Of a stretch of 64,000 nt of DNA, positions 1 to 32,469 are shown one piece after another. The notes beneath the pieces are model-generated. The model did no database searches, was not told the DNA's origin, and saw nothing but the letters and a program-made list of their open reading frames with translations. Both the position numbers and the translations under genes were made by a program. The DNA is taken from sequence record MN871445.1; one strand, written 5' to 3'. The number at the start of each line of letters is the position of its first letter. The first letter of the stretch is position 1.

Positions 1-906
1 CCCAGCGTCATCTTCTATGAAAAATTTGTCTTTTGACCCAATGACTATCGGGTTAATTATTCTTAGATTGCTGACATACGAGCAGTTAATCCCAATCCCA
101 AATGGGTTAGTGTAATTAATATTATTTAACCTTGGACGCTCTAATACGATATTTTCTAGTACGGTGGCTTTTCCACACACGGCGGTATCCGTAACTAAGA
201 ACGAATATTCCAACACCCTGTCCAGGGAATAAATATAATTACTGCCGGATACATCCCTTTTAGCAACTTTACGGAGTTGAGCTTGTTTAACTCCCTGATT
301 ATTTGCGCCCGGGACTAGTTTCTCAGATCTAATTTCGACCCAATCACCTACAGAAAACACGTCGGTAGTCAGTGTTATTTGATATCCCCCAGCCAAGGAG
401 TCCACTGCCAGACTATACCAGGTTGACGGGGCGGCACCGGCTAAGGTAAATCCTTGAACCAATGTAGCTGGAGCGTCAACTTCCCCCAACCCAGTAAAAG
501 TAATATAAGAATTGCTTTTAACGGATAAGGTTCCTGTCGGGGTGATCGCGGCATTAAAATGTATGTTGGTAAGTCCGGAAGCCAGGTATGTATTTATAGT
601 TGTGGATGTAGAAAATAATGAACTGTTGGCCGTCAGCTCTTTAACTAATTTCCATCGTTTTCCAAGGGTCGTAATTAAACAAGTAGTGGAATCATCTTGA
701 GTCTGAGTATCGGTTAAATCCGCTCGATATAAATATTTATTAAATAGCCACACTGCTTCACCATCAGTGGTTGGTTCTCTAGTTCTCAGAGTAGTAATAT
801 CAGCTATTTGTGGTATTTTATTATTTAGCGATATTTGTAAATTGCTACCGTCTGATGTCCCTATCAGACTCGCCCCTTTACCCATTTCACTTGAACCCAG
901 GTTTGA
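1..906 (-). CDS. Silent tailspike cassette A (headless, runs off the left edge; not in ORF track)
   Basis: Manual translation of the - strand from 906 is open to base 1: SNLGSSEMGKGASLIGTSDGSNLQISLNNKIPQIADITTLRTREPTTDGEAVWLFNKYLYRADLTDTQTQDDSTTCLITTLGKRWKLVK...FSVGDWVEIRSE...; in-frame TAA ~45 nt upstream and no start codon before the recombination site. Confidence 0.85.
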
Positions 907-912
907 AAGAAG
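835..912 (-). repeat. 78-bp inverted repeat copy of 6704-6781 (1 mismatch), containing site A
   Basis: Reverse complement CTTCTTTCAAACCTGGGTTCAAGTGAAATGGGTAA(A/C)GGGGCGAGTCTGATAGGGACATCAGACGGTAGCAATTTACAA matches 6704-6781. Confidence 0.95.
886..911 (-). other. Invertase recombination site A (hix/gix-like, 26 bp)
   Basis: Reverse complement TTCTTTCAAACC-TG-GGTTCAAGTGAA, identical to site C; AACC-NN-GGTT core as in hix/gix. Confidence 0.88.
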
Positions 913-929
913 CTCGATGTATACGGCCC

Positions 930-965
930 ATTTTATGCTGATAAAATTTTATTGAGGGGCCTATT
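930..965 (+). promoter_or_regulatory. Putative late promoter (TATG) and RBS of the 966 gene
   Basis: ATTTTATGC...GAGGGGC.TATTATG, similar in layout to the leader at 6542-6577. Confidence 0.45.
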
Positions 966-3515
966 ATGGCAGCGCTGCCGTCGTTGAAAAAAATATCGGA
1001 TCTGCCGACGTACGTATCCACATCGTCGCCATCCGTGGGAACGCTTTTATACACCGAGTCTGGTGTCGATTATAAACTGCCTGTTACTAAACTGTTGACC
1101 ACCGATAGTCTCAATCCGACACTTAATATCAACTCACCGTTGAACTATACCAGAAATAAAATTACAACCCCCATATCCAAAGCACTACAGGTATTGGATG
1201 TTACTGATGTCAGCATTTGGGAGTATGCTTCATTAATTACCACCAAAGGCAATGTTAATGATTATCAGACTTGGGACTGGACCCCAGCCATCCAGGCTGC
1301 CATTAACTACGTTATCTCATACCAATCCCAAACCGCGGTTAACTCAGGAATGTTTGGCGCTAAGCGTCTTTATATCCCTACCGGCGTATACCCGATTTAT
1401 TCGCAGCTAACCGTTACCAAATATGGTAGTAGTACGGGTAGTTTGGCGACGTCCCTCACTATTGTTGGTGATGGGATGACTTCGTCAATTATTCAACCGA
1501 TGACCGATGGTCAAATCGGTTTGCTGGCGACTAACTGTAAAATAAATGTGGATGGTGTCGGGATGCGTGCCGGGGCAGGTAACCAACAGCACTGGGTTCT
1601 CGGCCTAATCGACACGTGGGTCCCTGTTTTTCATTGCCATTTTAAATGTGTGGGTTCTTCAGGTGCCGCAAAGGGATTGGTACTTAATCTTTGTTTTGAT
1701 AGTACCTTTGAAGATGTGTTTGTTCAAAACATCGCCCCACTTAATTCCGGTGCTAGTGTGTCTTATGGGATTACTATTGAGACTTATACTGGCCCAGCTA
1801 ACGGCGGTACAACTGGCGATGGTAGTGGTGATGATTCCAATCAGTTAGTATTTATTAGGCCTACGGTGGAAACGGCGAACAGTGATAACACCATCATGTT
1901 CAACATCGCAGGTAAAAGCAGTACTTATCCGCATCACGCTATTAACGTCTATGGTGGCCATATTGAAACCCATAACCTTAAAGCGAAATGCTATAACCTG
2001 AAAAATGCTTTCAACGTTACTTTTAATGGTACCGTATTTTCTCAGAACGGTACTTCAGTAGATACGTTCTATCGTTTAGGTTATATTGAAAGTTGCTGGA
2101 ATTTACAATTTGTATCTTGCCGTCAAGTGACATCTAATCGATTGGCGGCTTATGATGCCGTTAACGATACCGTGATGATCAAAGTTACTGGCACTTCGAA
2201 AAACGTTAGATTCCTGAACACGCATTTTATCGGTCCTTATAATGACCTGTCTGCGTATAACCGCGGGATTAGTTGGCTTATCGATTCTACGGAAGCAGAT
2301 AAAACAACCCGCTCTTATATCCTGATTGGGTGTACTGTCGGGGTATATACAAATAAAGACATTACCTCAGAACTTCGGGTCACCGCGACTGACGTTTCCA
2401 GTCGAGAACACATCTTCCGCGTGGATGCATCTGGAAATTTGGTATTAGCCTATTCCAGTGATTCAACCGACACCACAGTACCGACCGATATCTTTGATAT
2501 CTCTAACGGCGGCGTCCTGCACACGAAAGATAACGTTTTGATTGGCTACAAAAACACGGCATCTGCAACGAGAACCCTCGGCTTTTACACGAATGGTGAT
2601 GGCGCTACCGTGATGGGTTCTATGGCGGTAGACAACGCGGGAAGGATGTACTTAACCGCGATGAGTGGGAGTAACCAATGGGTTCTTAACAGTACTGGTT
2701 TACAGCCGACCACTACGGCAACGCTTAACTTGGGTGCCTCAACGGCCACGTTAGCCGCGTCGTACGTTGTAAAAAGAATGTACACGGCAACTGTTGGTGA
2801 TTTTTATGGGTCAGGAAGTCCCGAGGGTGTGGTTAGTGCAGGGATTGGTTCGACATATCGTCGTACTGATGGCACGGTAAACACCTCGTTTTATGTGAAG
2901 GAATCTGGAACAGGTACTACGGGTTGGGTATCCACTGGTTCAGTCAGGCCATATGTTTCTGGCATGTTTGTGAGTCCAGGGAATCTGGTGTTGTCTGGAA
3001 ACTACATATTTAAATATCTGGGTACTGCTGCAGATATTACCGTCGCTCCAGTACCTGGAACACTGTGGAGTATGTTGACTCCGGGGGCTTCAGTAAAAAT
3101 AAAAGCCACGACAACTCAAACCACCACAACAGGAACCAATACAGCCCTAACTTGGGCATCCGCTACCACGGAGTATAATAGTAGCAGTATTTATACGATT
3201 GCTACTGCCGGGATTACCGTTCCAGTGGCCGGGATATATCGCATCGCCGGTAGGGTTGCTTTTGCTTCCAACAACACAGGTACCCGATCGGCCGGGGTAT
3301 TTATTAACGGCTCCTATTACGCGGGGTCTCAGGCTAGATTCGTTGCCAAATCCGGCGGGTATGCAACTACCGCTGATTACAATGATACCATGTCATTGGC
3401 GGCGGGAACAATCATCACGCTATCTGGATTCCAGGATTCTGGTGGGAACTTAGATACTGTTGCAACAGCCCCAGATGTATCTTTCCTGATAGTCAGTTTG
3501 GTAAGCTACGTTTAA
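966..3515 (+). CDS. Tailspike / depolymerase-like receptor-binding protein
   Basis: KKISDLPTY anchor motif, WTPAIQAAI...LYIPTGVY beta-helix cap, GSPEGVVSA...YVKESGTGTTGW motif, C1q-like C-terminal extension. Confidence 0.85.
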   Translation: MAALPSLKKISDLPTYVSTSSPSVGTLLYTESGVDYKLPVTKLLTTDSLNPTLNINSPLNYTRNKITTPISKALQVLDVTDVSIWEYASLITTKGNVNDYQTWDWTPAIQAAINYVISYQSQTAVNSGMFGAKRLYIPTGVYPIYSQLTVTKYGSSTGSLATSLTIVGDGMTSSIIQPMTDGQIGLLATNCKINVDGVGMRAGAGNQQHWVLGLIDTWVPVFHCHFKCVGSSGAAKGLVLNLCFDSTFEDVFVQNIAPLNSGASVSYGITIETYTGPANGGTTGDGSGDDSNQLVFIRPTVETANSDNTIMFNIAGKSSTYPHHAINVYGGHIETHNLKAKCYNLKNAFNVTFNGTVFSQNGTSVDTFYRLGYIESCWNLQFVSCRQVTSNRLAAYDAVNDTVMIKVTGTSKNVRFLNTHFIGPYNDLSAYNRGISWLIDSTEADKTTRSYILIGCTVGVYTNKDITSELRVTATDVSSREHIFRVDASGNLVLAYSSDSTDTTVPTDIFDISNGGVLHTKDNVLIGYKNTASATRTLGFYTNGDGATVMGSMAVDNAGRMYLTAMSGSNQWVLNSTGLQPTTTATLNLGASTATLAASYVVKRMYTATVGDFYGSGSPEGVVSAGIGSTYRRTDGTVNTSFYVKESGTGTTGWVSTGSVRPYVSGMFVSPGNLVLSGNYIFKYLGTAADITVAPVPGTLWSMLTPGASVKIKATTTQTTTTGTNTALTWASATTEYNSSSIYTIATAGITVPVAGIYRIAGRVAFASNNTGTRSAGVFINGSYYAGSQARFVAKSGGYATTADYNDTMSLAAGTIITLSGFQDSGGNLDTVATAPDVSFLIVSLVSYV

Positions 3516-3524
3516 GGAGTTACC

Positions 3525-4043
3525 ATGCCAGCAAGTATGTATGTAGTGGATACGTCCCTACCCTCTGTTGATTTGGTCTACGGGCTTATCAACAACGATA
3601 ACAACACAGTTTACAGTAAATCAACACTCAACCTGGCTACGCCAGAAACAAATACCAATCCCGCGATTGATCGTAATAGTAAAATCCTGGCTTCGAACAT
3701 CAAATACAGTAACAACACGCTGATGCTGTATTACGATAGATTGGATATTGCTGATGTATTGCGCATGGAGTTACCCATCATTTTGTCGAATGTAACTGAA
3801 ACCACGGTAGACCAAATGATGTGGTTTTTTAACTCCACGTACAAGATGGGATTGACCAAAGCTGAAATTAGTGCGTCGGCGGTTGATTTAACCGGCAACA
3901 CCACTACGTGGGCAATTGCGGATAATTCAATGGCGTGGGTGGGAAATCTACCATTAACCATTTTACCATCTGGGTACGGTCTTTTGATTGATGAAACAAA
4001 CAATCAATTGTTGGATGAGGATGGGTCATATTTGATTTTATAA
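3525..4043 (+). CDS. Virion structural/adaptor protein (paralog of 12190)
   Basis: LVYGLINNDN, YYDRLD, SMAWVGNLP and C-terminal LLDEDGSYLIL shared with 12190..12711. Confidence 0.7.
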   Translation: MPASMYVVDTSLPSVDLVYGLINNDNNTVYSKSTLNLATPETNTNPAIDRNSKILASNIKYSNNTLMLYYDRLDIADVLRMELPIILSNVTETTVDQMMWFFNSTYKMGLTKAEISASAVDLTGNTTTWAIADNSMAWVGNLPLTILPSGYGLLIDETNNQLLDEDGSYLIL

Positions 4044-4056
4044 ATAGGGCATAAAA

Positions 4057-4076
4057 GGGAGGGCGAAAGCCCTCCC
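4057..4076. terminator. Hairpin between convergent genes
   Basis: GGGAGGGC-GAAA-GCCCTCCC; TTTTATGCC follows on the - strand. Confidence 0.8.
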
Positions 4077-4109
4077 GATATGTTGTCTAGTAGAAAACAG
4101 GTATAAAAA

Positions 4110-5924
4110 TTAAAATATCCAACATCCCCGAGCAGAATTCCACATAAATTCATATATCCCGACATCGGTGATGGAAACCGAAGTTAATCCACTCCCACCA
4201 GGACCGTAAATGGTTTGTGCATTAGAGGTTTGTATGGTATACGTCGGGGCCGCCAATACTTTTTTAACTCGAATCATAAAGCCACTAGACAAACCACTGG
4301 CGTCTGGCAGCGTAAAAGTACTGGCTGAGGAAGCAACGGAATAATACAAATTACTTAATCCAGTTGTGGGGAAAGTATACCCCGAAGTAATTTCAGTGTA
4401 TGTGATATTGACCCCGGACAAATAATTCAAATATAATTTACCGGTACCCCACGTGAGCATTGGTAATGGATCTGCAGTACCACCACCGCCATAAATGCCA
4501 TTAGGGGTAATATTTAATCTGGCATAATTTTCACTAGTATATTTTACACTGTATCTAACTTGAGTAGTGGATGTTGCGGCTTGTTGAATTGGCTGTATAG
4601 CATCTAAATATCTGACCTCATTAAAGGTATAATTACTCCTATTTGGGTTAGAAGTTATCGCCACTGCCGCACTATCGCCCAATGAACCAGTAGCTACCGA
4701 GGAGGTGAATATGTCTTTTTCACCATCCCAAATGGTAGTCGATCCGGATTGGAACGCCATGCAATAGGCTACTCTAGTATAATTGCTATCGGAGGAATAG
4801 TTAAAATGGCTGTTTGAAGTGACTATCTTCCTAATAGACGCGGTTAATTTAATATTCGCATAGGCGTCGGTAAGCAATGTATCCGCGCTAGACCGCCAAC
4901 CATTGGCAAAAAACGTGGTTGCTAAAATTTCATGTATTTCAGACCCTCCTGGGGTATTAAACAGAATACCATTTTTACCGCAGGAATTTACATGATTACG
5001 CACCATTGAAGTTATTGTCGCTGTAGGACCAAATACGATACCATTTTCCCTACCTTCATAAGACTCAGAATTAATCATTCTGAAACTACCGCAATTGGCG
5101 TAGATATTATCTTCATTACTTCTACCAATCGATGAACTAAATAACATCCAGTCCACGGCGCTTTCCAAATACAGGCATGATTTCCAACACCACAAAACAC
5201 TACTATAATTTAAAAATCCCATGTTTCTTTTAACGCCGGCATATACCCCATAACCAGAAAAATTAGATATTGTCGAATTTATAAATTGTAGGGATGTGGC
5301 GTATTGGCTTGCGGCGGTTAGATAAATACAATTCAATTGTCCCGTCGTGGGGGGTGTTGGACTATATATTGAACCGGTAGTAGTCCAGTCCCCGACTAAT
5401 CGACAGCCATCAAAAGTAGGTGATGCTGCCGCCGACACGGTGAACATATTCCCAACAGTGCCGGGGTAGGGCTTGATATAACTTTCTGAACGCTTACCGG
5501 CCCCTTCAAAATAAACACTACTAGTAATATTAAGATTACCCACTAAATAAGTAGTGTCCTGTTTTAATACTATTTTTCCGGTTCCAGCGGCATTAATTGC
5601 ATTTTGAAAAGGTATGGTATCATCGGATACGCCATCGCACTTCACGCCAAACCAATCCGGATTTATCTTAACTACATTCGAACGTTTCCATCGTTTACCC
5701 CCAACAGTGACTATTACGGTTCCACCATTGTCAGTAGAAGTCGTATCCGCAGCATCATAATAAAATTCACCGCCGCCAACTGGGGCGATAGTAATAGCCC
5801 ATCCCGGGTAATATGCGACAACCTCAATTTTTTGTCCGGAGGTGGTCGGCTCTATCGTCCGTAAGGTTGAAATATCGGAACACCGACCAATATATTTATA
5901 TCCATCACTTGAACCCAGGTTTGA
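4110..5924 (-). CDS. Silent tailspike cassette B (pectate-lyase-like beta-helix), lacking its own N-terminus
   Basis: Begins at site B with SNLGSSDGYKYIG; DNGGTVIVTVGGKRWKR and WFGVKCDGVSDDTIPFQNAINAA motifs; the called TTG start has no RBS. Confidence 0.85.
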   Translation of the reverse strand, partial: SNLGSSDGYKYIGRCSDISTLRTIEPTTSGQKIEVVAYYPGWAITIAPVGGGEFYYDAADTTSTDNGGTVIVTVGGKRWKRSNVVKINPDWFGVKCDGVSDDTIPFQNAINAAGTGKIVLKQDTTYLVGNLNITSSVYFEGAGKRSESYIKPYPGTVGNMFTVSAAASPTFDGCRLVGDWTTTGSIYSPTPPTTGQLNCIYLTAASQYATSLQFINSTISNFSGYGVYAGVKRNMGFLNYSSVLWCWKSCLYLESAVDWMLFSSSIGRSNEDNIYANCGSFRMINSESYEGRENGIVFGPTATITSMVRNHVNSCGKNGILFNTPGGSEIHEILATTFFANGWRSSADTLLTDAYANIKLTASIRKIVTSNSHFNYSSDSNYTRVAYCMAFQSGSTTIWDGEKDIFTSSVATGSLGDSAAVAITSNPNRSNYTFNEVRYLDAIQPIQQAATSTTQVRYSVKYTSENYARLNITPNGIYGGGGTADPLPMLTWGTGKLYLNYLSGVNITYTEITSGYTFPTTGLSNLYYSVASSASTFTLPDASGLSSGFMIRVKKVLAAPTYTIQTSNAQTIYGPGGSGLTSVSITDVGIYEFMWNSARGCWIF

Positions 5925-5929
5925 GGGAA
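5904..5929 (-). other. Invertase recombination site B
   Basis: Reverse complement TTCCCTCAAACC-TG-GGTTCAAGTGAT, 23/26 identical to site C. Confidence 0.88.
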
Positions 5930-5962
5930 TATATGTCGACACCAACCCTCAAGGACATAAAA

Positions 5963-6514
5963 ATGATCTACGGTTATGCCCGAGTTTCTACTCAACATCA
6001 GGATACTACACTACAACTTATTGCGCTTCAGGCAGCTGGCTGCGATGAAATTCGCGAAGAAAAAGCGTCTGGTAGAAGTAGAAACAGGCCCGTATTGAAG
6101 AAACTGCTAACCGATCTTCAATCCGGCGATGAATTAGTATTGTGGAAAATAGACAGGATGGGTAGGAATGTATTACATGCCTTAACCTGGTTGGCTGAGC
6201 TGCAAGATAAGAATGTAAACCTCAGGTCGATCACCGATGCCATCGATATGCGCACTGCTTCTGGCCGTTATAGTTTTCGCAATATTTTGAATGCCGCACA
6301 GTACGAATCGGACGTAAATAGCGAAAGAACCTTGGCTGGACTAGCTGCAGCCAGAGCACAAGGTAGGGTGGGTGGAAGAAAACCAACAATGACCGAACCC
6401 GTTTTGGAGAAAGCACGGGATTTGATAAATGCTGGAAACAATTACCGCGAAGTAGCTGAAGCCATCGGAGTGACCACAAAAACGATATACAAATATTTTC
6501 CAGTCAATTCATAA
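5963..6514 (+). CDS. Serine recombinase, Hin/Gin/Pin DNA-invertase family (183 aa)
   Basis: MIYGYARVST (catalytic Ser9), WKIDRMGR, ERTLAGLAAARAQGRVGGR, C-terminal HTH; AAGGA RBS at 5951; the upstream ORF-track extension is spurious. Confidence 0.95.
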   Translation: MIYGYARVSTQHQDTTLQLIALQAAGCDEIREEKASGRSRNRPVLKKLLTDLQSGDELVLWKIDRMGRNVLHALTWLAELQDKNVNLRSITDAIDMRTASGRYSFRNILNAAQYESDVNSERTLAGLAAARAQGRVGGRKPTMTEPVLEKARDLINAGNNYREVAEAIGVTTKTIYKYFPVNS

Positions 6515-6520
6515 TTTTTG

Positions 6521-6543
6521 ATGAGGCGGCTTGGCCGCCTCAT
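6521..6543 (+). terminator. Hairpin after invertase gene
   Basis: ATGAGGCGGC-TTG-GCCGCCTCAT followed by TTTATGC. Confidence 0.75.
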
Positions 6544-6577
6544 TTTATGCTTATCATTTTTTACAAGAGGGGCTATC
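6542..6577 (+). promoter_or_regulatory. Putative late promoter (TATG) and RBS of the constant tailspike head
   Basis: ATTTTATGC...AGAGGGGCTATCATG; TATG is the phiKZ late-promoter consensus. Confidence 0.45.
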
Positions 6578-8269
6578 ATGGCCAACAGAGCGATTACGAA
6601 GAAAATTAGTGCTTTGCCGACCTACGCACTGAACAACAATAACGGCAATTTACTGTATAGTGAGGGGGGTGCAAATTACCAATTTCCGTTGAGTAATATT
6701 GCCCTTCTTTCAAACCTGGGTTCAAGTGAAATGGGTAACGGGGCGAGTCTGATAGGGACATCAGACGGTAGCAATTTACAACAAATTGCAACAGTAGTAA
6801 GTGACCAACTTATAACCAACCCACAAATTGTTGCTGGCGACAACATGTCCGTTTTAGACCGAATCAAAGTCAAAGGTCAGTATGACATCAACCCGGCACC
6901 TCAGGAACCCCAAGCTGCAGTAGGTATTACTTTTGGAGGGCAGAATAATACCGGAACCATTATGTTAAATAGTCGAGGTGGAATTCAAACCTCGGTCACA
7001 GTAGATGGTTTAACTACAGCGAAAGGATTACACTACCCCTATTCGGAAGGAATGGGTTATTGGCATGGGGCCTATCAAGATACCTTAGTAAAATTCCCTA
7101 TAGACGGGATGGCCGATGATAATATCACATACGGTATATTGTTCTCACATGACGAAAAAACCAACACTCCCAGGATGTTTGCGGTATCTCCACAGTTAAC
7201 AGAACGGGTTAACTATACAGATCCAGGTAGATATCGCTGGGGCGGCGCAAACTTTACAGCAGTCCGTGAATTGGCCCAGCTCGATGCAATTGGTAGAAGT
7301 TCAGCCAATTCATACGACACTTGGTTCACATTGGATAGTTCCAATCCCAATTATATTAATTTCGTATCTTTAACAAATCCAAATTCTGTTACTGGTGGTA
7401 ATTTTTCATGTATTTTCAGTATAGGCAATTATAGTGCTGATAAAGTTACAACCTACATACTGGACGTAACAATTCCATCGGCGATTACCGCATTAACTCA
7501 ATATGACGTTAATAAATACATTAGATTTACGGGGATTGGTGGAGGTTCACTATATCACTATACGGACGCTACTTCTCAAACAAAACCTCGGATTGGTTTT
7601 GTTCAAAACACCACCACCGGGGTACTTGATTTTTATATTCAGGTACCAGCACACGCAACCTATTTTGGTTGTAAATGCTTAAATTCAGGCAATCCTGCTT
7701 TATTTGACTGGAGATGGAGAAATTACACCGGGGGTACGCAATTATCGGGTCTTGCCGGTAGTCCTCCTGCAGGTGTTGTTTGGGGGAACACGGCATATAC
7801 TGGAAGTAATTATCGAACAGTGATGTTAAATGACGGTAGTTTATTTTCAGTACCTGAGGGCTATGCTGTCTTGAGATGTCACATCAATGGCCCAGCCGGG
7901 GTGATTAACGCCGCGCCATTTAAAGCATATGTGTCATCATTTTGTTATGCGACTAATTTCGACAGTAAAATAGCCAATGTGACTTGCGCCATACCTAGTT
8001 TAAACTGGTATATCACCGGAGCAGATCTAGCCACAGATATGCCTTGGCAGATTAGACTCCCCCACGATCTAACTGATGTCGAATCGTACCGATGTGTTGT
8101 GTCTAGTACTGATACAACAAATCACACATTTATGTTTGCTGTCAAAAAAGTGAATACTTCCGGCACGTTAGATTCCAGTAATAACGTAATTTTGACCAAG
8201 TCCCTAAGTACTAGTCCAGTACAAATAAGTAGTGTATCGTGGATTGATGTACTGGTTAAACTACCATAA
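6578..8269 (+). CDS. Currently assembled switchable receptor-binding protein: constant head (aa 1-46) plus cassette C (563 aa)
   Basis: MANRAITKKISALPTY anchor; site C at codons 43-51; GASLIG neck; GAGG RBS before ATG 6578. Confidence 0.85.
   Translation: MANRAITKKISALPTYALNNNNGNLLYSEGGANYQFPLSNIALLSNLGSSEMGNGASLIGTSDGSNLQQIATVVSDQLITNPQIVAGDNMSVLDRIKVKGQYDINPAPQEPQAAVGITFGGQNNTGTIMLNSRGGIQTSVTVDGLTTAKGLHYPYSEGMGYWHGAYQDTLVKFPIDGMADDNITYGILFSHDEKTNTPRMFAVSPQLTERVNYTDPGRYRWGGANFTAVRELAQLDAIGRSSANSYDTWFTLDSSNPNYINFVSLTNPNSVTGGNFSCIFSIGNYSADKVTTYILDVTIPSAITALTQYDVNKYIRFTGIGGGSLYHYTDATSQTKPRIGFVQNTTTGVLDFYIQVPAHATYFGCKCLNSGNPALFDWRWRNYTGGTQLSGLAGSPPAGVVWGNTAYTGSNYRTVMLNDGSLFSVPEGYAVLRCHINGPAGVINAAPFKAYVSSFCYATNFDSKIANVTCAIPSLNWYITGADLATDMPWQIRLPHDLTDVESYRCVVSSTDTTNHTFMFAVKKVNTSGTLDSSNNVILTKSLSTSPVQISSVSWIDVLVKLP
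6705..6730 (+). other. Invertase recombination site C (inverted relative to A and B)
   Basis: TTCTTTCAAACC-TG-GGTTCAAGTGAA, read in frame as S-N-L-G-S-S. Confidence 0.9.
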
Positions 8270-8284
8270 GTCGTAGGTGAGAAC

Positions 8285-10012
8285 ATGAATTATTATTATA
8301 TCGATCCAACCGCCACGTCCTCAGGTAATGGGACAATAACATCACCACATCAATCGTTTACTGCGCTGATCTCCGCAGGTATAATTCATCCATGCACTAT
8401 TTATTTGAAACGAGGGACTACGTTATGTGAAAACGCCAACTTTGGTGTATCTGGTCTGGCCAATACTACTGGGATTATGTCGTATATAGATTGCTACGGT
8501 TCCGGGCCTTTACCAATATGGTTGAATAAAAAATACGTCACCGTGGGAACCGCATTAGATGGATATACTTATAGCGGTATGCATATTACCGCACGAAATA
8601 CACAAAACATCACCATCCAAAATATTGAATTTTATACCAGGAATGACTTGACTGTGGTTGACAATAACCCCTCTTCATTCTTATGGTTGGAATTGCCAGC
8701 GGCCACTACCGAGATATCCGCTAACGTATGGGTTAACCAATGTAAGTTCCATGGTGACCCGATTATCCGTAGTGGAAAACACACGTGGTATGAATCGGTC
8801 ATTAATATAAAAGTCAATGCAAGTGCAACTAATAGGGTTAATTATTTTGGCGTACGGTATTGTGACTTTTATAACGTATCAAGGCCCATCAATATTGTCG
8901 GCAATCATTGGACGGCGGACGATATTACTAGCAATACAACTGGTACTTATTATTCCAGGGGTGTAAAAGTAGAACACTGTTCTATGGTCGGGATTTCAAA
9001 AGGCGGTTGTCAGTTTGCCGGAGTGGAAAGTAAAAACTCCGCATATGTCGTGGATGTTGACCAATCGGTTATGCGCGATATCAGCTATTCCAAATACCGA
9101 TGGGATAACGCGTTGGAAAATTCTGATACGTTGTATGCTGACGCCGGATTCTGGACTTATAGATGTAATCGGGTGATGCTTGAAAATATCCGTGGTGGTG
9201 GGATGTGGCCTTCTGTGACGGACAACGAATTAATTGATTTCGATTACCTCAGCTGGGATTGTGTTGCACGATACATTATCGGGTTCAACAACGCAGCATC
9301 AATATTGTTTATGGGGCATTCTTCTACCGCTTCTCAAGGCGGTTCTAGGGCAGCATATTCAGGTTATTCCTCAACGTATACTCCAGCGCAATGGTTTTAT
9401 GAGCGTAGAAATGGTCAGGGTAATAACATTGTTGAGTTTTGCTATTTCTTCAACGATGGGATTCAAACCGTGCCCGCCCCCTCCACTGGATATGGGGATT
9501 GCGCAAATATCCGTTCCAGGAATATAAATTATTCAAATATTGTTAGGAATTGTGTATTCATTGATACCGTGTCTACTACGATGAAATATTTGGTTTCTAA
9601 TAACAATCTTGCACTTACTGCTGGAGAGCCATACCGTCTATCTATCGAAAACTGCGTTTACTATTCCAGATACAACAATGGAATTGACCTAATAACTCCA
9701 CTCGCAAACACAACCACGTATAGTGCAACAGCGACGAAGATGACTAACATAATTGCTATGTCTGCCGCATGGGCAAGTACTAATTATGCGTCTATTCTTA
9801 GCACTTTAAGTGCTAACTGCACCACTAATAATGCTCGGATAGTCGACCCCCTATTTCGCTTCGTACCAGCCCAACCTCCAGTATCGGTGAAATCGGCATT
9901 AAAGATATCCGTGACCTCCGATTCACCCTGTATTTCTTCCGGCATATCCAGCGGTAATTTGGACATCGTGGGGAAAACGTGCTCCGATATTTTTTGGAGA
10001 TCCTTAAGTTGA
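8285..10012 (+). CDS. Beta-helix polysaccharide lyase/depolymerase-like protein without virion-anchor module
   Basis: YYIDPTATSSGNGTITSP N-terminus, IQNIEF and VRNCVF beta-helix rungs, DPLF near C-terminus. Confidence 0.65.
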   Translation: MNYYYIDPTATSSGNGTITSPHQSFTALISAGIIHPCTIYLKRGTTLCENANFGVSGLANTTGIMSYIDCYGSGPLPIWLNKKYVTVGTALDGYTYSGMHITARNTQNITIQNIEFYTRNDLTVVDNNPSSFLWLELPAATTEISANVWVNQCKFHGDPIIRSGKHTWYESVINIKVNASATNRVNYFGVRYCDFYNVSRPINIVGNHWTADDITSNTTGTYYSRGVKVEHCSMVGISKGGCQFAGVESKNSAYVVDVDQSVMRDISYSKYRWDNALENSDTLYADAGFWTYRCNRVMLENIRGGGMWPSVTDNELIDFDYLSWDCVARYIIGFNNAASILFMGHSSTASQGGSRAAYSGYSSTYTPAQWFYERRNGQGNNIVEFCYFFNDGIQTVPAPSTGYGDCANIRSRNINYSNIVRNCVFIDTVSTTMKYLVSNNNLALTAGEPYRLSIENCVYYSRYNNGIDLITPLANTTTYSATATKMTNIIAMSAAWASTNYASILSTLSANCTTNNARIVDPLFRFVPAQPPVSVKSALKISVTSDSPCISSGISSGNLDIVGKTCSDIFWRSLS

Positions 10013-12713: not shown

Positions 12714-15191
12714 ATGTCTACTAAAGTAGTGAAAAAGAAACTCACGGACCTGCCCGTGTACGTGCAGACTACTGCTAGTTCGGGTTCCCTTCATTATCGT
12801 GAAGGAAATGTCGATTACCAATTTCCGATCACTTCTATACTTACGCCTATATCTCTCGGGGCCGTAGATGGTTACAAGTATATTGGTCAAGTAACATCAT
12901 TTGCAGCACTTAGAAGCCTATCTCCGACCGCCGAAGGCGCTAGAATTAAACTACGCGAATATGCGGTTGGTACTGGTATGGGTGGTGGGGATTTCATCGG
13001 ACATATCGGAACAGCAACCGATGACTCCGGCACTATTGCGGTTGGGACGGGTTATTACTGGAAACGTGTAATTGATGTCCCAGGCGTAATTGATGCCACT
13101 TGGTTTGGTGTGACCAATGATGGTGTTTCTTCGGCACAGGCCATTAGTTTGGCGTTGGACTATATTTCTGTAACTGGGGGGATTTTGAGATTCCCTTCGG
13201 GGGAAATAAACTGGGGGACCCTGAGAAAAGTCATTAACTATTCAACCTCGTTGGTGTCTTTTACCATAGAAGGTATGGGTGACTCTACTCTATTTTCTTA
13301 TGATGATGTCCCACCACCCACATTACCCGCGGGCAGTAATTGGGTAAAAGAATCCCCCTTATTGTCATTTATTGGCAATAACGGGACCCAATGCATTCCA
13401 CCGATTACTTTACAAAAATTCAGAATGGATTACTCTCGCCAGGTAAATAAGGGAGGGAATACATTAGAGACTTTGGGGATTACACACCCCACGCCATATT
13501 CCCTGGGGGTTTGGGGATTTTACTTCATGTATGCTGACTCGCCCTACATTAATCGGGTTAAAATGTCGAACATATATGGTGATGGTATTTTCATCAGAAA
13601 ATCATTTACCCCGCGCGTTCAAGATTGTCACTTTTATAATGTCTCCGCTGGGAACATTATTGCAAGAACTGATGGGAACATGGCGTCAGATTCTAACGGA
13701 GGTGCTGTCTTCATATGGGCGTGCGTTGGTGGCGTTGTGGATGGGTGTGTTGCGTGGAACCAACGTTTATATCAAGTGCACGTCAATTCGACCGACAACG
13801 GTACGGATGTTTATGGTACTTTGTGTGGGTATATTGGATTTTGGACCGAATATCCGTGGGACCAAAACCTGACCGCGACTACTCCGGAAACGGCACCGCC
13901 TCGAGTTAACGGGTTTATTACGACGGCGAACGTTACGACCAATAATTACGATAATGAAGCCAAAGGTTGCACGATTAGCAATTGTACTGTTTATGGTTAC
14001 ACTATCGGAATTAAATCCGAGGGTCAGAACGAAACCAATATCACCAATAACTTGGTTTTAAACTGCTATCTTCCTCTTTTCCCGGCAAGTACTCGAGCGA
14101 CGATTTCCAATAACTTTACGGACATGCTTTATTGTGATAATAGGAAATGCCCTCAAGGTGGTTATGAGAGTATTCGTGCTCATTTAGTTAGCCACAATTA
14201 TTCTACTTATGATGATGGGATGCGTCGGGGAGTAGAATTCAAAGGTAATAAATGCTATTGTACGAATTACCCAGCAATCCGCTCTAACCGTGCAGGTACT
14301 CTGTTTGATTCCAACATGTTTAGATTCTCTCGGGGAACGGCATTTCTATTCGATGTTACGATCAATACTTTGAAAAAAGGAGTAGTTCTGCGAGACAATA
14401 CCTTTTTCATCGATTCTACCATTTCTGGGGTAACTACTTCAAATGTGGCCTATCAAGATGGTATTGTATTTGCCGGTAATAGGTTTGTCAACAACTCGTC
14501 GCAGGTGGTTACTATTGCCTTTAGGAACAGCAGTACCGATGTTCGCGTAGATGATAATACGTTTGAAGGTGCGTTTTTCTTTGCTTTACAATGTTCGGGA
14601 ACCGTGGAAAAAAATATTTTTGATGTTAACACGGCCGTTGGTGGGGTCTACCAAACTACCGTTGTTTTCCAGGCCACGGCTAGGGGGACCATCCGGAACA
14701 ACACCTTCCGACTTAATACGGCAGTAACGACCGCACAAATATCATTAGGTGCGGATAACATCCGATTTGATGGTAATGAAATCTCGTTTAAAGATACCGG
14801 TGCTGGAACTGCGTTGGCGCTTATTTATTCCGAGTCTAGTGCAGCGGGATTGGTACTTCAAAACAATAAAATATTAACTAACCCTTATGCTTTACCTATG
14901 TTTTATTTGTATGGGTCCCATTATCCGACCATCATTGGGAATAGCAATCCACTTGGTGCTGGCATCCGCTACGGAAGTCAGATTTACGCACCGATTACTT
15001 TGGATAGAAATTTATTTTCCACGCCATTTTCTAACCTTACTACGGAGAAAAACAATGCAGCTAATTTTTCTTCTAAGGCGATATCGTATCAGGGATTAAA
15101 AATGCCATACTTATTCCCGGTAGCTGGAGGGGCGGAAGGGGTAGTTTATACTCCAACTGGATGGAAAACATACGGTAGCATCTCAGCATAA
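12714..15191 (+). CDS. Tailspike / depolymerase-like protein
   Basis: KKLTDLPVY anchor, LGAVDGYKYIG, DDSGTI, WFGV..DG, GEINW beta-helix features. Confidence 0.85.
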   Translation: MSTKVVKKKLTDLPVYVQTTASSGSLHYREGNVDYQFPITSILTPISLGAVDGYKYIGQVTSFAALRSLSPTAEGARIKLREYAVGTGMGGGDFIGHIGTATDDSGTIAVGTGYYWKRVIDVPGVIDATWFGVTNDGVSSAQAISLALDYISVTGGILRFPSGEINWGTLRKVINYSTSLVSFTIEGMGDSTLFSYDDVPPPTLPAGSNWVKESPLLSFIGNNGTQCIPPITLQKFRMDYSRQVNKGGNTLETLGITHPTPYSLGVWGFYFMYADSPYINRVKMSNIYGDGIFIRKSFTPRVQDCHFYNVSAGNIIARTDGNMASDSNGGAVFIWACVGGVVDGCVAWNQRLYQVHVNSTDNGTDVYGTLCGYIGFWTEYPWDQNLTATTPETAPPRVNGFITTANVTTNNYDNEAKGCTISNCTVYGYTIGIKSEGQNETNITNNLVLNCYLPLFPASTRATISNNFTDMLYCDNRKCPQGGYESIRAHLVSHNYSTYDDGMRRGVEFKGNKCYCTNYPAIRSNRAGTLFDSNMFRFSRGTAFLFDVTINTLKKGVVLRDNTFFIDSTISGVTTSNVAYQDGIVFAGNRFVNNSSQVVTIAFRNSSTDVRVDDNTFEGAFFFALQCSGTVEKNIFDVNTAVGGVYQTTVVFQATARGTIRNNTFRLNTAVTTAQISLGADNIRFDGNEISFKDTGAGTALALIYSESSAAGLVLQNNKILTNPYALPMFYLYGSHYPTIIGNSNPLGAGIRYGSQIYAPITLDRNLFSTPFSNLTTEKNNAANFSSKAISYQGLKMPYLFPVAGGAEGVVYTPTGWKTYGSISA

Positions 15192-15220: not shown

Positions 15221-15256
15221 TTATGCCGTCCATTATAAATAAAAAAATATCACGCC

Positions 15257-15264
15257 TATATTAC
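15257..15264 (+). promoter_or_regulatory. phiKZ-type early promoter element TATATTAC
   Basis: Exact octamer, A-rich upstream, intergenic before 15314. Confidence 0.7.
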
Positions 15265-15313
15265 TGTACTGACGTATGGTTCTTTCTTTTATTTAACGGG
15301 ATATGTAATTAAA

Positions 15314-19696: not shown

Positions 19697-20250
19697 TGAT
19701 AATGGAAATGTATACCCGTAAAGAAGACTATTGGGCAATGTTGGCCAGTACCGTAACTGACCCCGTTCTTTCTCCGGTCTATAAAGCCATCTCATCTTCC
19801 GTTGCTTATTTCAGCAACGTATGTGTTCGAATCAATGCAACGGAGTATGACTTGTCGACGCATACTGAGTTTTCCGTGGAATACGCATTCGGCGATTTAA
19901 CGTTAGAGCCGCCGACCCGACATCCATATGCTTCCATCAGACTCGTTACCGAGCCTACTGATGAAGTCATCGAAAACTCTACTGAAGCAGAAGTGGCTGA
20001 TGCGTGGCGATTAGTTACTGCATCTAATTCGCATCTATCGTTTGGGTACAGCCCGCTGTTTATTTTTTATCGCCATATGGTAAAAAATGGGCTACCGCAA
20101 CCCAGAGCAAAAGTCCATGAAAACTCAACCGGGCTTACTTTGGAATGGATGCTATCAAGCGGGGCCCGGGTTGTAATGGATTACAACAACCTCCTGATGG
20201 AAGCCTGGTGGGCGGAATGTAACGGTGAAGTGAACTCACTTCAAAGCTAA
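19696..20250 (+). CDS. Hypothetical protein
   Basis: TAATG overlap with upstream stop. Confidence 0.6.
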   Translation: MIMEMYTRKEDYWAMLASTVTDPVLSPVYKAISSSVAYFSNVCVRINATEYDLSTHTEFSVEYAFGDLTLEPPTRHPYASIRLVTEPTDEVIENSTEAEVADAWRLVTASNSHLSFGYSPLFIFYRHMVKNGLPQPRAKVHENSTGLTLEWMLSSGARVVMDYNNLLMEAWWAECNGEVNSLQS

Positions 20251-20276
20251 TCGTCATGTAACTGTGGAGACTTATC

Positions 20277-20843
20277 GTGAATACCAACTTACTACTGAGT
20301 CATCTGTTTGCAATGCATCCGTATAAACTCTGTATTGATGTAGATATGCACCGCCGAGATAAGGATAGTTTAGCTTCGTATTTACGTTACTCCACAGCTC
20401 CGGGTAGTGAGGTGAACACCATCTTGCAGGGGGACACCTACGCCATGGTCGCGGTGGACTGGCATGTTGGTCGTGGAGAGTATGCGCATTACGAGGTCTG
20501 GGCCGCCACGTTACATGAGGCACTCACCGCGACAGTCAACCATCTACAGGCATTTGGTGTGGAGTCCGACGTTCTAGTGGACGTCACAGCCGGGCATGGG
20601 TTGGATACACTCATACCCAAATGTAAGCGGGGGCTATCTATCTGTCGTTGGGATTTTACTCACACGGCGGGATGCGATAAGTGGGATGTACTTCACGAAT
20701 ATGGGGATGAGCTATCAGCTGAATTGTTGGAGGACATACTTGAAACAAATTGTTTCGTGGATGTGGACTTCGGCGTAGTAGGTACCCGCAATCGTGGGGT
20801 TGAGTTAGGGTCATCTCTGGACGTATTGATAGAAAACGTATAA
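20277..20843 (+). CDS. Hypothetical protein
   Basis: GGAGA RBS, GTG start. Confidence 0.6.
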   Translation: MNTNLLLSHLFAMHPYKLCIDVDMHRRDKDSLASYLRYSTAPGSEVNTILQGDTYAMVAVDWHVGRGEYAHYEVWAATLHEALTATVNHLQAFGVESDVLVDVTAGHGLDTLIPKCKRGLSICRWDFTHTAGCDKWDVLHEYGDELSAELLEDILETNCFVDVDFGVVGTRNRGVELGSSLDVLIENV

Positions 20844-20845
20844 TT

Positions 20846-20865
20846 GGGAGGGCGTTTGCCCTCCC
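20846..20865 (+). terminator. Rho-independent terminator
   Basis: GGGAGGGC-GTTT-GCCCTCCC plus T-tract. Confidence 0.8.
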
Positions 20866-32459: not shown

Positions 32460-32469
32460 CACCATAAAA

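Follow-up and report, generated by a model that had tools for sequence, protein, structure and literature searches.

The DNA analysed here, a stretch of 64,000 nucleotides referred to below as the window, belongs to Serratia phage KpHz_2 (MN871445.1; 270,429 bp), a jumbo phage whose host is Klebsiella pneumoniae; positions 3400-8400 match this phage at 100% identity. KpGz_1 is its closest relative, and Klebsiella phage vB_KvM-Eowyn is related more distantly. Eowynviruses have been described as obligately lytic (PMC13757433), and the phage closest to Eowyn forms a phage nucleus and is a member of the Chimalliviridae (10.1101/2024.10.29.620934). By analogy, the KpHz_2 lineage is probably nucleus-forming. 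A tailspike gene cluster, with small DUF7941 virion proteins in between, occupies the initial 15 kb of the window together with the 18 kb preceding the window. The first ~44 residues, which form the anchor, are common to nine tailspike genes of this cluster, and the sequences diverge beyond that point.

The left edge of the window is occupied by cassette C, a putative third alternative tailspike body on the minus strand (1-897, continuing ~1.1 kb past the edge), with a 26-bp crossover site, site C, at 886-911 (-) that is identical to site A described below. A fixed tailspike gene (966-3515, +) and a DUF7941 gene (3525-4043, +) follow. Cassette B lies next, on the minus strand (4110-5915): it encodes a neck of the Phage_tail_beta type, a beta-helix and a C-terminal domain, is intact and anchor-less, and would be silent as oriented. 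It abuts a second 26-bp site, site B (5904-5929, -), which shares the core and the central TG of site A and lies in the opposite orientation; positions 4110 to 5929 thus run from the stop codon of cassette B to the outer end of its site. A short stretch at 5930-5962, the rear end of the proposed invertible piece, carries the ribosome-binding site of the invertase on the plus strand and a TTG (5945) and a GTG (5942) on the minus strand, which ORF callers use as the start of cassette B. It leads into the gene of a 183-aa serine DNA invertase (5963-6514, +), with Ser9 within a YARVST motif, followed by a hairpin terminator (6520-6544, +), a promoter-like element with a ribosome-binding site (6542-6577, +) and codons 1-47 of the switchable tailspike, here called the head (6578-6718, +). 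Site A (6705-6730, +; 26 bp) spans codons 43-51 of this expressed gene, and body A, currently joined to the head, extends from 6719 to 8269 (+). Directly behind body A is a 575-aa open reading frame (8285-10012, +) without the shared anchor, whose sole match is a PHROG family of unknown function (2e-88); its product may be a partner or accessory of body A. Further downstream, the fixed tailspike gene at 12714-15191 (+), composed of anchor, neck and beta-helix and without a crossover site, provides an internal control.

The reading frame of cassette B is open and complete over 611 codons. The precomputed Pfam match of its product is PF27114 (Phage_tail_beta), and the solved tailspike 6w4q aligns with residues 8-352 (4e-18), in the order of a neck followed by a beta-helix. 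The Beta_helix match of the product itself scores 19.2 bits, under the cut-off of 25.9; close homologues carry PF12708 or PF13229. The closest full-length relatives are found in phiKp_32 (60% identity), Centimanus (44%), and FBKp27 and Tribble (42%). All four align with cassette B to their own last residue and have anchors of their own of 85 to 330 residues. Judged from these similarities, cassette B appears to be a complete, anchor-less capsule-depolymerase tailspike body. The sole hint at its capsule type is the isolation of Tribble, 42% identical, on strain KPPR1; the phages with homologues of cassette B are not mentioned in DepoCatalog. Searches for close relatives of cassette B returned one distant match in IMG/VR and, in JGI metagenomes, none either at the protein level or with a DNA pattern combining the site and the DGYKYI motif.

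The 26-bp sites have the features of those used by the Hin, Gin, Cin and Pin invertases: they are imperfectly symmetric, their central TG is asymmetric, and A and B are in inverted orientation. Sites A and B form a 25-nt inverted repeat (5905-5929 and 6705-6729), which is the top inverted repeat of the region. The 19-nt core occurs in three exact copies in the 64 kb, against 0.03 expected by chance, and is identical in all three sites, the flanks of which differ. In IMG/VR and GTDB genomes the core has eight matches, none with blastn similarity to the first 16 kb of the window, and we read these as probably due to chance. The pinL loci of phi80 and mEp237, the nearest relatives of the invertase, look decayed and could not be used for a comparison of sites. 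The gix site of Mu, taken from the annotated ends of the G segment, was used instead: it agrees with the KpHz_2 sites at 16 of 26 positions, including the frame TTC-N4-AAACC-NN-GGTT. Another three sites, related but centred on CC instead of TG, are located 9.2-13.5 kb to the left of the window (at about -13498, -9615 and -9229). They surround a short head-only module, and the element ahead of its head is the one also found ahead of the head at 6578.

The invertase itself has the domain content of a small serine recombinase, with a resolvase domain (PF00239, 3.6e-36) and a helix-turn-helix (PF02796, 1.3e-5). It aligns over its full length with the Gin structures 4m6f and 3uj3 (E 2e-44), with Ser9 in register, and shares 62% identity with PinL of phi80, the Pin-type enzyme of phi80-like phages. 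Systems of the Hin/Gin/Cin/Pin type possess a Fis-bound enhancer in cis, usually near the 5' end of the invertase gene and within it. Neither paired Fis sites ~48 bp apart nor any enrichment emerged from a crude scan based on a Fis consensus.

Between sites B and A lie the intact gene of this Gin/Pin-like invertase with its terminator, the promoter-like element and tailspike codons 1-47. The 8-mer ATTTTATG is a candidate promoter element that would travel with the heads: in the 82 kb searched, all three of its copies (window positions 930-945 and 6542-6560, and -9252 in the left flank) lie upstream of starts of anchor-type tailspikes that adjoin a crossover site, at a distance of 28-50 nt. A scan for sigma-70 promoters gave matches no commoner than in shuffled sequence. 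On the other side of cassette B, 34 nt past its stop codon, a GC-rich hairpin with a T-tract on the minus strand only (4057-4076, -; z -5.0) is read as a putative terminator serving cassette B. The same region (4048-4089) contains a repeated element, a GGGAGGGC..GCCCTCCC hairpin followed by TTTTATGC. Further copies are at 32469 and 45481 in the window, at -11959 and -7234 in the left flank and on many contigs of metagenomes, and the element probably serves as a standard terminator, to which a TATG start signal may be added.

Several comparisons locate the joint between head and body. The crossover point falls within codon 47 of the expressed gene. In PHROG tail families, the matches of cassette B start at its residues 6-9, opposite profile positions 130-226, and the same profile positions are matched by the product of the fixed gene at 12714 from its residues 40-48. 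In solved tailspikes with full-length chains, residues 8-10 of cassette B lie opposite chain residues 191-253; in 5w6p, a 680-residue chain named tailspike protein 2, which we take to be an N-terminally truncated construct, they lie opposite residue 12. Among 19 database relatives, nine give alignments that start at residues 3-10 of cassette B and at residues 112-225 of their own. The profiles, the structures and these nine relatives all have an N-terminal anchor of 110-250 residues ahead of the start of the match, while cassette B as encoded has at most seven residues ahead of the neck and so lacks a virion anchor. The missing anchor is the part that the head would supply. The sequence-only reading had placed the crossover exactly at the natural boundary between anchor and body, and this placement is borne out, since the homology of cassette B to profiles, solved tailspikes and nine relatives begins at residues 3-10, at the site. 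The peptide encoded by the site is thus the native start of a widespread neck domain (PF27114, Phage_tail_beta according to its source), and the joint, marked at the resolution of a single codon, is a natural point for exchanging anchors and bodies. The peptide LGSSDGYKYIG also occurs at the joint position in an unrelated siphophage tail protein, behind a 140-residue N-terminus and with no invertase nearby.

Joining the head (6578-6718) to the minus strand from 5915 to 4110 at the central TG, by a script operating on window coordinates, gives an in-frame fusion of 1947 nt encoding 648 aa with zero internal stops. It had been proposed that this fusion recreates the architecture of the fixed tailspike at 12714, on the basis of the peptides KKLTDLPVY...DYQFP and LRSLSPT in the fixed gene and KKISALPTY...NYQFP and LRTIEPT in the fusion. 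These peptides are all present; seven linker residues per protein, ITSILTP of the fixed gene and LSNIALL of the head, had been skipped in the quotation, and the point is unaffected by this. The alignment of the fusion with the 12714 product that had been suggested as a check was carried out by BLASTP and agrees with the proposal: there is one colinear HSP, residues 1-144 against 1-139 (39% identity, E 1e-23), and its sole gap, of one residue, is inside the anchor, with none within 25 residues of the joint. The head aligned alone matches residues 1-42 of 12714 (E 1e-9) and cassette B alone matches residues 39-139 (E 5e-15), and the two separate alignments give one and the same register (fixed = fusion + 1). 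Moreover, the YQFP-type motif in the anchor and DG(Y/F)K in the neck are 13 residues apart in all four proteins compared: the fusion, 12714, and the orthologues of 12714 in Eowyn and KpGz_1. The resemblance is limited to anchor and neck (~140 aa), and the beta-helix bodies are unrelated, as expected for enzymes of different specificities. Because the neck domain is widespread, the comparison with 12714 is a valid control but the weakest of the tests.

The fixed locus has a history of its own. Nucleotide similarity between 12714 and its KpGz_1 and Eowyn orthologues stops ~90 nt into the gene (12714-12807), and the bodies differ in all three phages, so that this locus, too, presumably swaps bodies right behind the anchor, by homologous recombination. 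A relic crossover site at the homologous place in 12714 was considered and rejected, the site being absent there. The seven codons preceding site B (5930-5950, -), which read LVSTYIP, align loosely with the 12714 linker ITSILTP and could be a vestige of an older head for cassette B, although the stretch is too short to judge. In Eowyn, a putative transposase gene (19760-20854) is inserted behind the 12714 orthologue; it is absent at the corresponding place in the window (15221-15266).

The relatives of KpHz_2 and metagenomic data provide natural variants of the locus. In KpGz_1 the silent slot holds, at the same site, a different intact body of 507 aa (6676-8198, -); the exchanged block has one end precisely at the site and the other immediately behind the stop codon, in the shared terminator region. 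Both sequenced sister phages are in the orientation in which body A is on, and the flipped state of KpHz_2 itself is found in no read or record. In Eowyn an identical 51-residue head (12812-13059) leads, through a site with two mismatches, into a fourth body; upstream of the head, all that is left of the invertase gene is its last ~25 nt. We read Eowyn as a probable locked descendant of the switch, the loss of its invertase indicating that the switch can decay.

Metagenome contigs from four public runs were compared with positions 3500-8400 of the window. In one run (X1), cassette B, site B and the invertase are colinear with the window at ~97% identity, i.e. in the form in which B is silent. 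Another run, from wastewater (X8), contains pieces of cassette B at 97-99% identity and a 325-nt contig that passes from 6535-6709 (+) straight into 5924 to 5799 (-), with 0 and 1 mismatches on the two sides. The two parts share 20 letters at the joint, with the head-type flank before the core and the B-type flank after it, which is the arrangement predicted for an exchange at the central TG. The assembler word is 31 letters; if this figure holds, an overlap of 20 letters is too short for a collapsed repeat, and the join must have been present in the reads. Neither the invertase nor body A was seen in X8, and the 24 letters upstream of 6535 in the contig differ from the window and match nothing that was compared; the head-B gene of X8 may therefore be a fixed gene and not the product of a flip. 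The head-B join of X8 and the silent B of the window and X1 come from different samples. Whether the X8 gene is fixed or flipped, the contig points to the use in nature of a KpHz_2-type head with a B body, joined at the site.

The arrangement leads us to propose the following mechanism. The phage-encoded serine invertase would recombine site A (6705-6730) with the inverted site B (5904-5929), thereby flipping ~0.8 kb that comprise the invertase gene, the terminator, the promoter-like element, the ribosome-binding site and tailspike codons 1-47. After the flip, the 44-residue virion anchor would be read into cassette B to yield a 648-aa tailspike built like that of 12714, and body A would be disconnected. 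A flip between sites A and C (886-911) would offer a third body and invert 5.8 kb, a segment that would include the tailspike gene 966-3515, the DUF7941 gene, cassette B and the invertase; head and cassette C together form an open frame of ~710 aa. That cassette B is a silent, anchor-less depolymerase body which can be joined to the head by a Gin/Pin-type invertase acting on sites A and B is, in our judgement, highly probable on the sequence evidence. We infer, in addition, that KpHz_2 has an active enzyme, that the product is mounted on the virion by its anchor and that cassette B alters capsule specificity.

Two other explanations deserve consideration. Cassette B could be an independent gene, translated as now oriented from the GTG at 5942 or the TTG at 5945 into a free, anchor-less depolymerase. 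Indeed, the GTG is preceded at 5 nt by a GAGGG motif and, further upstream, by a TTTTATG string; a public gene caller recorded a 610-aa product from this GTG, and cassette B has its own terminator. The start and its Shine-Dalgarno-like motif, however, are inside the invertible piece, where they are the reverse complement of the invertase leader; both start codons would move to body A after a flip and are not part of cassette B. The same 5930-5962 stretch precedes a different cassette in KpGz_1, and with only eight open codons upstream of the site, the odds that a start codon occurs there by chance are about one in three. For cassette C, no in-frame start is available ahead of the site, and the same holds for the equivalent end of the second switch, where the upstream sequence was read by eye. 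Moreover, the ATTTTATGCT element of real heads is absent before cassette B, and every relative with the neck domain has an N-terminal anchor. An independent gene is therefore very unlikely.

According to the other explanation, which we consider unlikely though somewhat less so, the switch has become a relic whose sites are no longer recombined by the invertase, and cassette B, recently stranded and decaying, is reached at most by rare homologous recombination at the short repeat. The Eowyn locus, where the head and a site carrying two mismatches survive but the invertase gene is gone except for its last ~25 nt, would fit such a history, as would the lack of the flipped state in either sequenced sister phage, the failure of the crude scan to find an enhancer and the possibility that the X8 head-B is a fixed gene. 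Against this, the invertase is intact and has its catalytic serine, the three cores have stayed identical over 19 nt despite differing flanks, and the 611-codon frame of cassette B is open and complete. Furthermore, the silent slot of KpGz_1 contains a different, intact and in-frame body introduced by an exact swap, which is unlike the behaviour of a pseudogene. The view of the sequence-only reading, that cassette B is a functional silent allele rather than an independent gene or debris, is supported by the lack of an anchor and start of its own, its complete end, its terminator and the natural head-B join, and cassette B is best regarded as a probable silent allele awaiting inversion of the head.

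A more far-reaching proposal is that the switch operates during the lytic growth of a virulent, nucleus-forming jumbo phage, with the invertase acting inside the chimallin shell without host Fis, and that each burst contains a mixture of virions bearing body A, B or C on the same anchor. We put this proposal forward only tentatively, as possible but rather improbable. If it is true, mixed bursts would amount to bet-hedging on capsule type atop an already multi-spike phage. It is conceivable, too, that translation from the GTG at the rear of the flipped piece turns whichever body is disconnected into a free enzyme. Given a probable phage nucleus, it is doubtful that host Fis could reach the DNA, and this counts against the proposed inversion between sites A and B in general.

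The proposed switch recalls the Gin/G segment of Mu and the Cin/C segment of P1. There, too, the 26-bp, imperfectly symmetric sites of a small serine invertase are embedded in frame in a tail-fibre gene, and inversion swaps the receptor-binding C-terminal portion while the N-terminal portion stays constant. The layout is different. The invertible segment of Mu and P1 encloses the two variable parts and leaves the constant part and the invertase outside; in KpHz_2 the head, its signals and the invertase would flip between sites B and A and bodies A and B stay outside. Moreover, the KpHz_2 bodies are beta-helix depolymerase tailspikes, whereas those of Mu and P1 are fibres with chaperones, and KpHz_2 is a virulent 270-kb jumbo phage, whereas Mu and P1 are temperate. 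In the Salmonella Hin/H segment, the invertase gene and an expression signal ride inside ~1 kb, and inversion turns one operon on or off. The KpHz_2 layout is closer to that of Hin than to that of Mu and P1, although the segment also carries 47 codons and would choose between protein bodies. More than two crossover sites and several tail-fibre ends are known from the Min system of p15B, where the cassettes are in one complex invertible region and the constant part is outside; KpHz_2 has three sites, plus three at the second, upstream locus, and a mobile head. The KpHz_2 system is a new layout of the Mu/P1 host-range switch.

Many depolymerase tailspikes on short shared N-terminal anchors are likewise found in the Ackermannviridae (TSP1-4 of CBA120) and in the Klebsiella jumbo phages RaK2 and K64-1, and the neck and helix of cassette B match the solved chains 5w6p and 6w4q as well as RaK2 and K64-1 proteins. 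Unlike what is proposed for KpHz_2, all spikes of CBA120, RaK2 and K64-1 are displayed at once from fixed genes. In the papers searched we found no report of an invertase-driven choice in multi-tailspike phages of this type, nor of an invertase-driven depolymerase tailspike switch in jumbo phages.

Capsule specificity limits the host range of Klebsiella phages and hence phage therapy. In jumbo phages of this group, breadth has been thought to come only from the accumulation of fixed depolymerases (10.64898/2026.05.12.724579). If bodies are instead chosen reversibly by an enzyme, a single genome sequence would under-report host range, and a phage stock could be phenotypically mixed. Genes in backward orientation annotated as "hypothetical", such as cassette B, would then be real receptor-binding modules.
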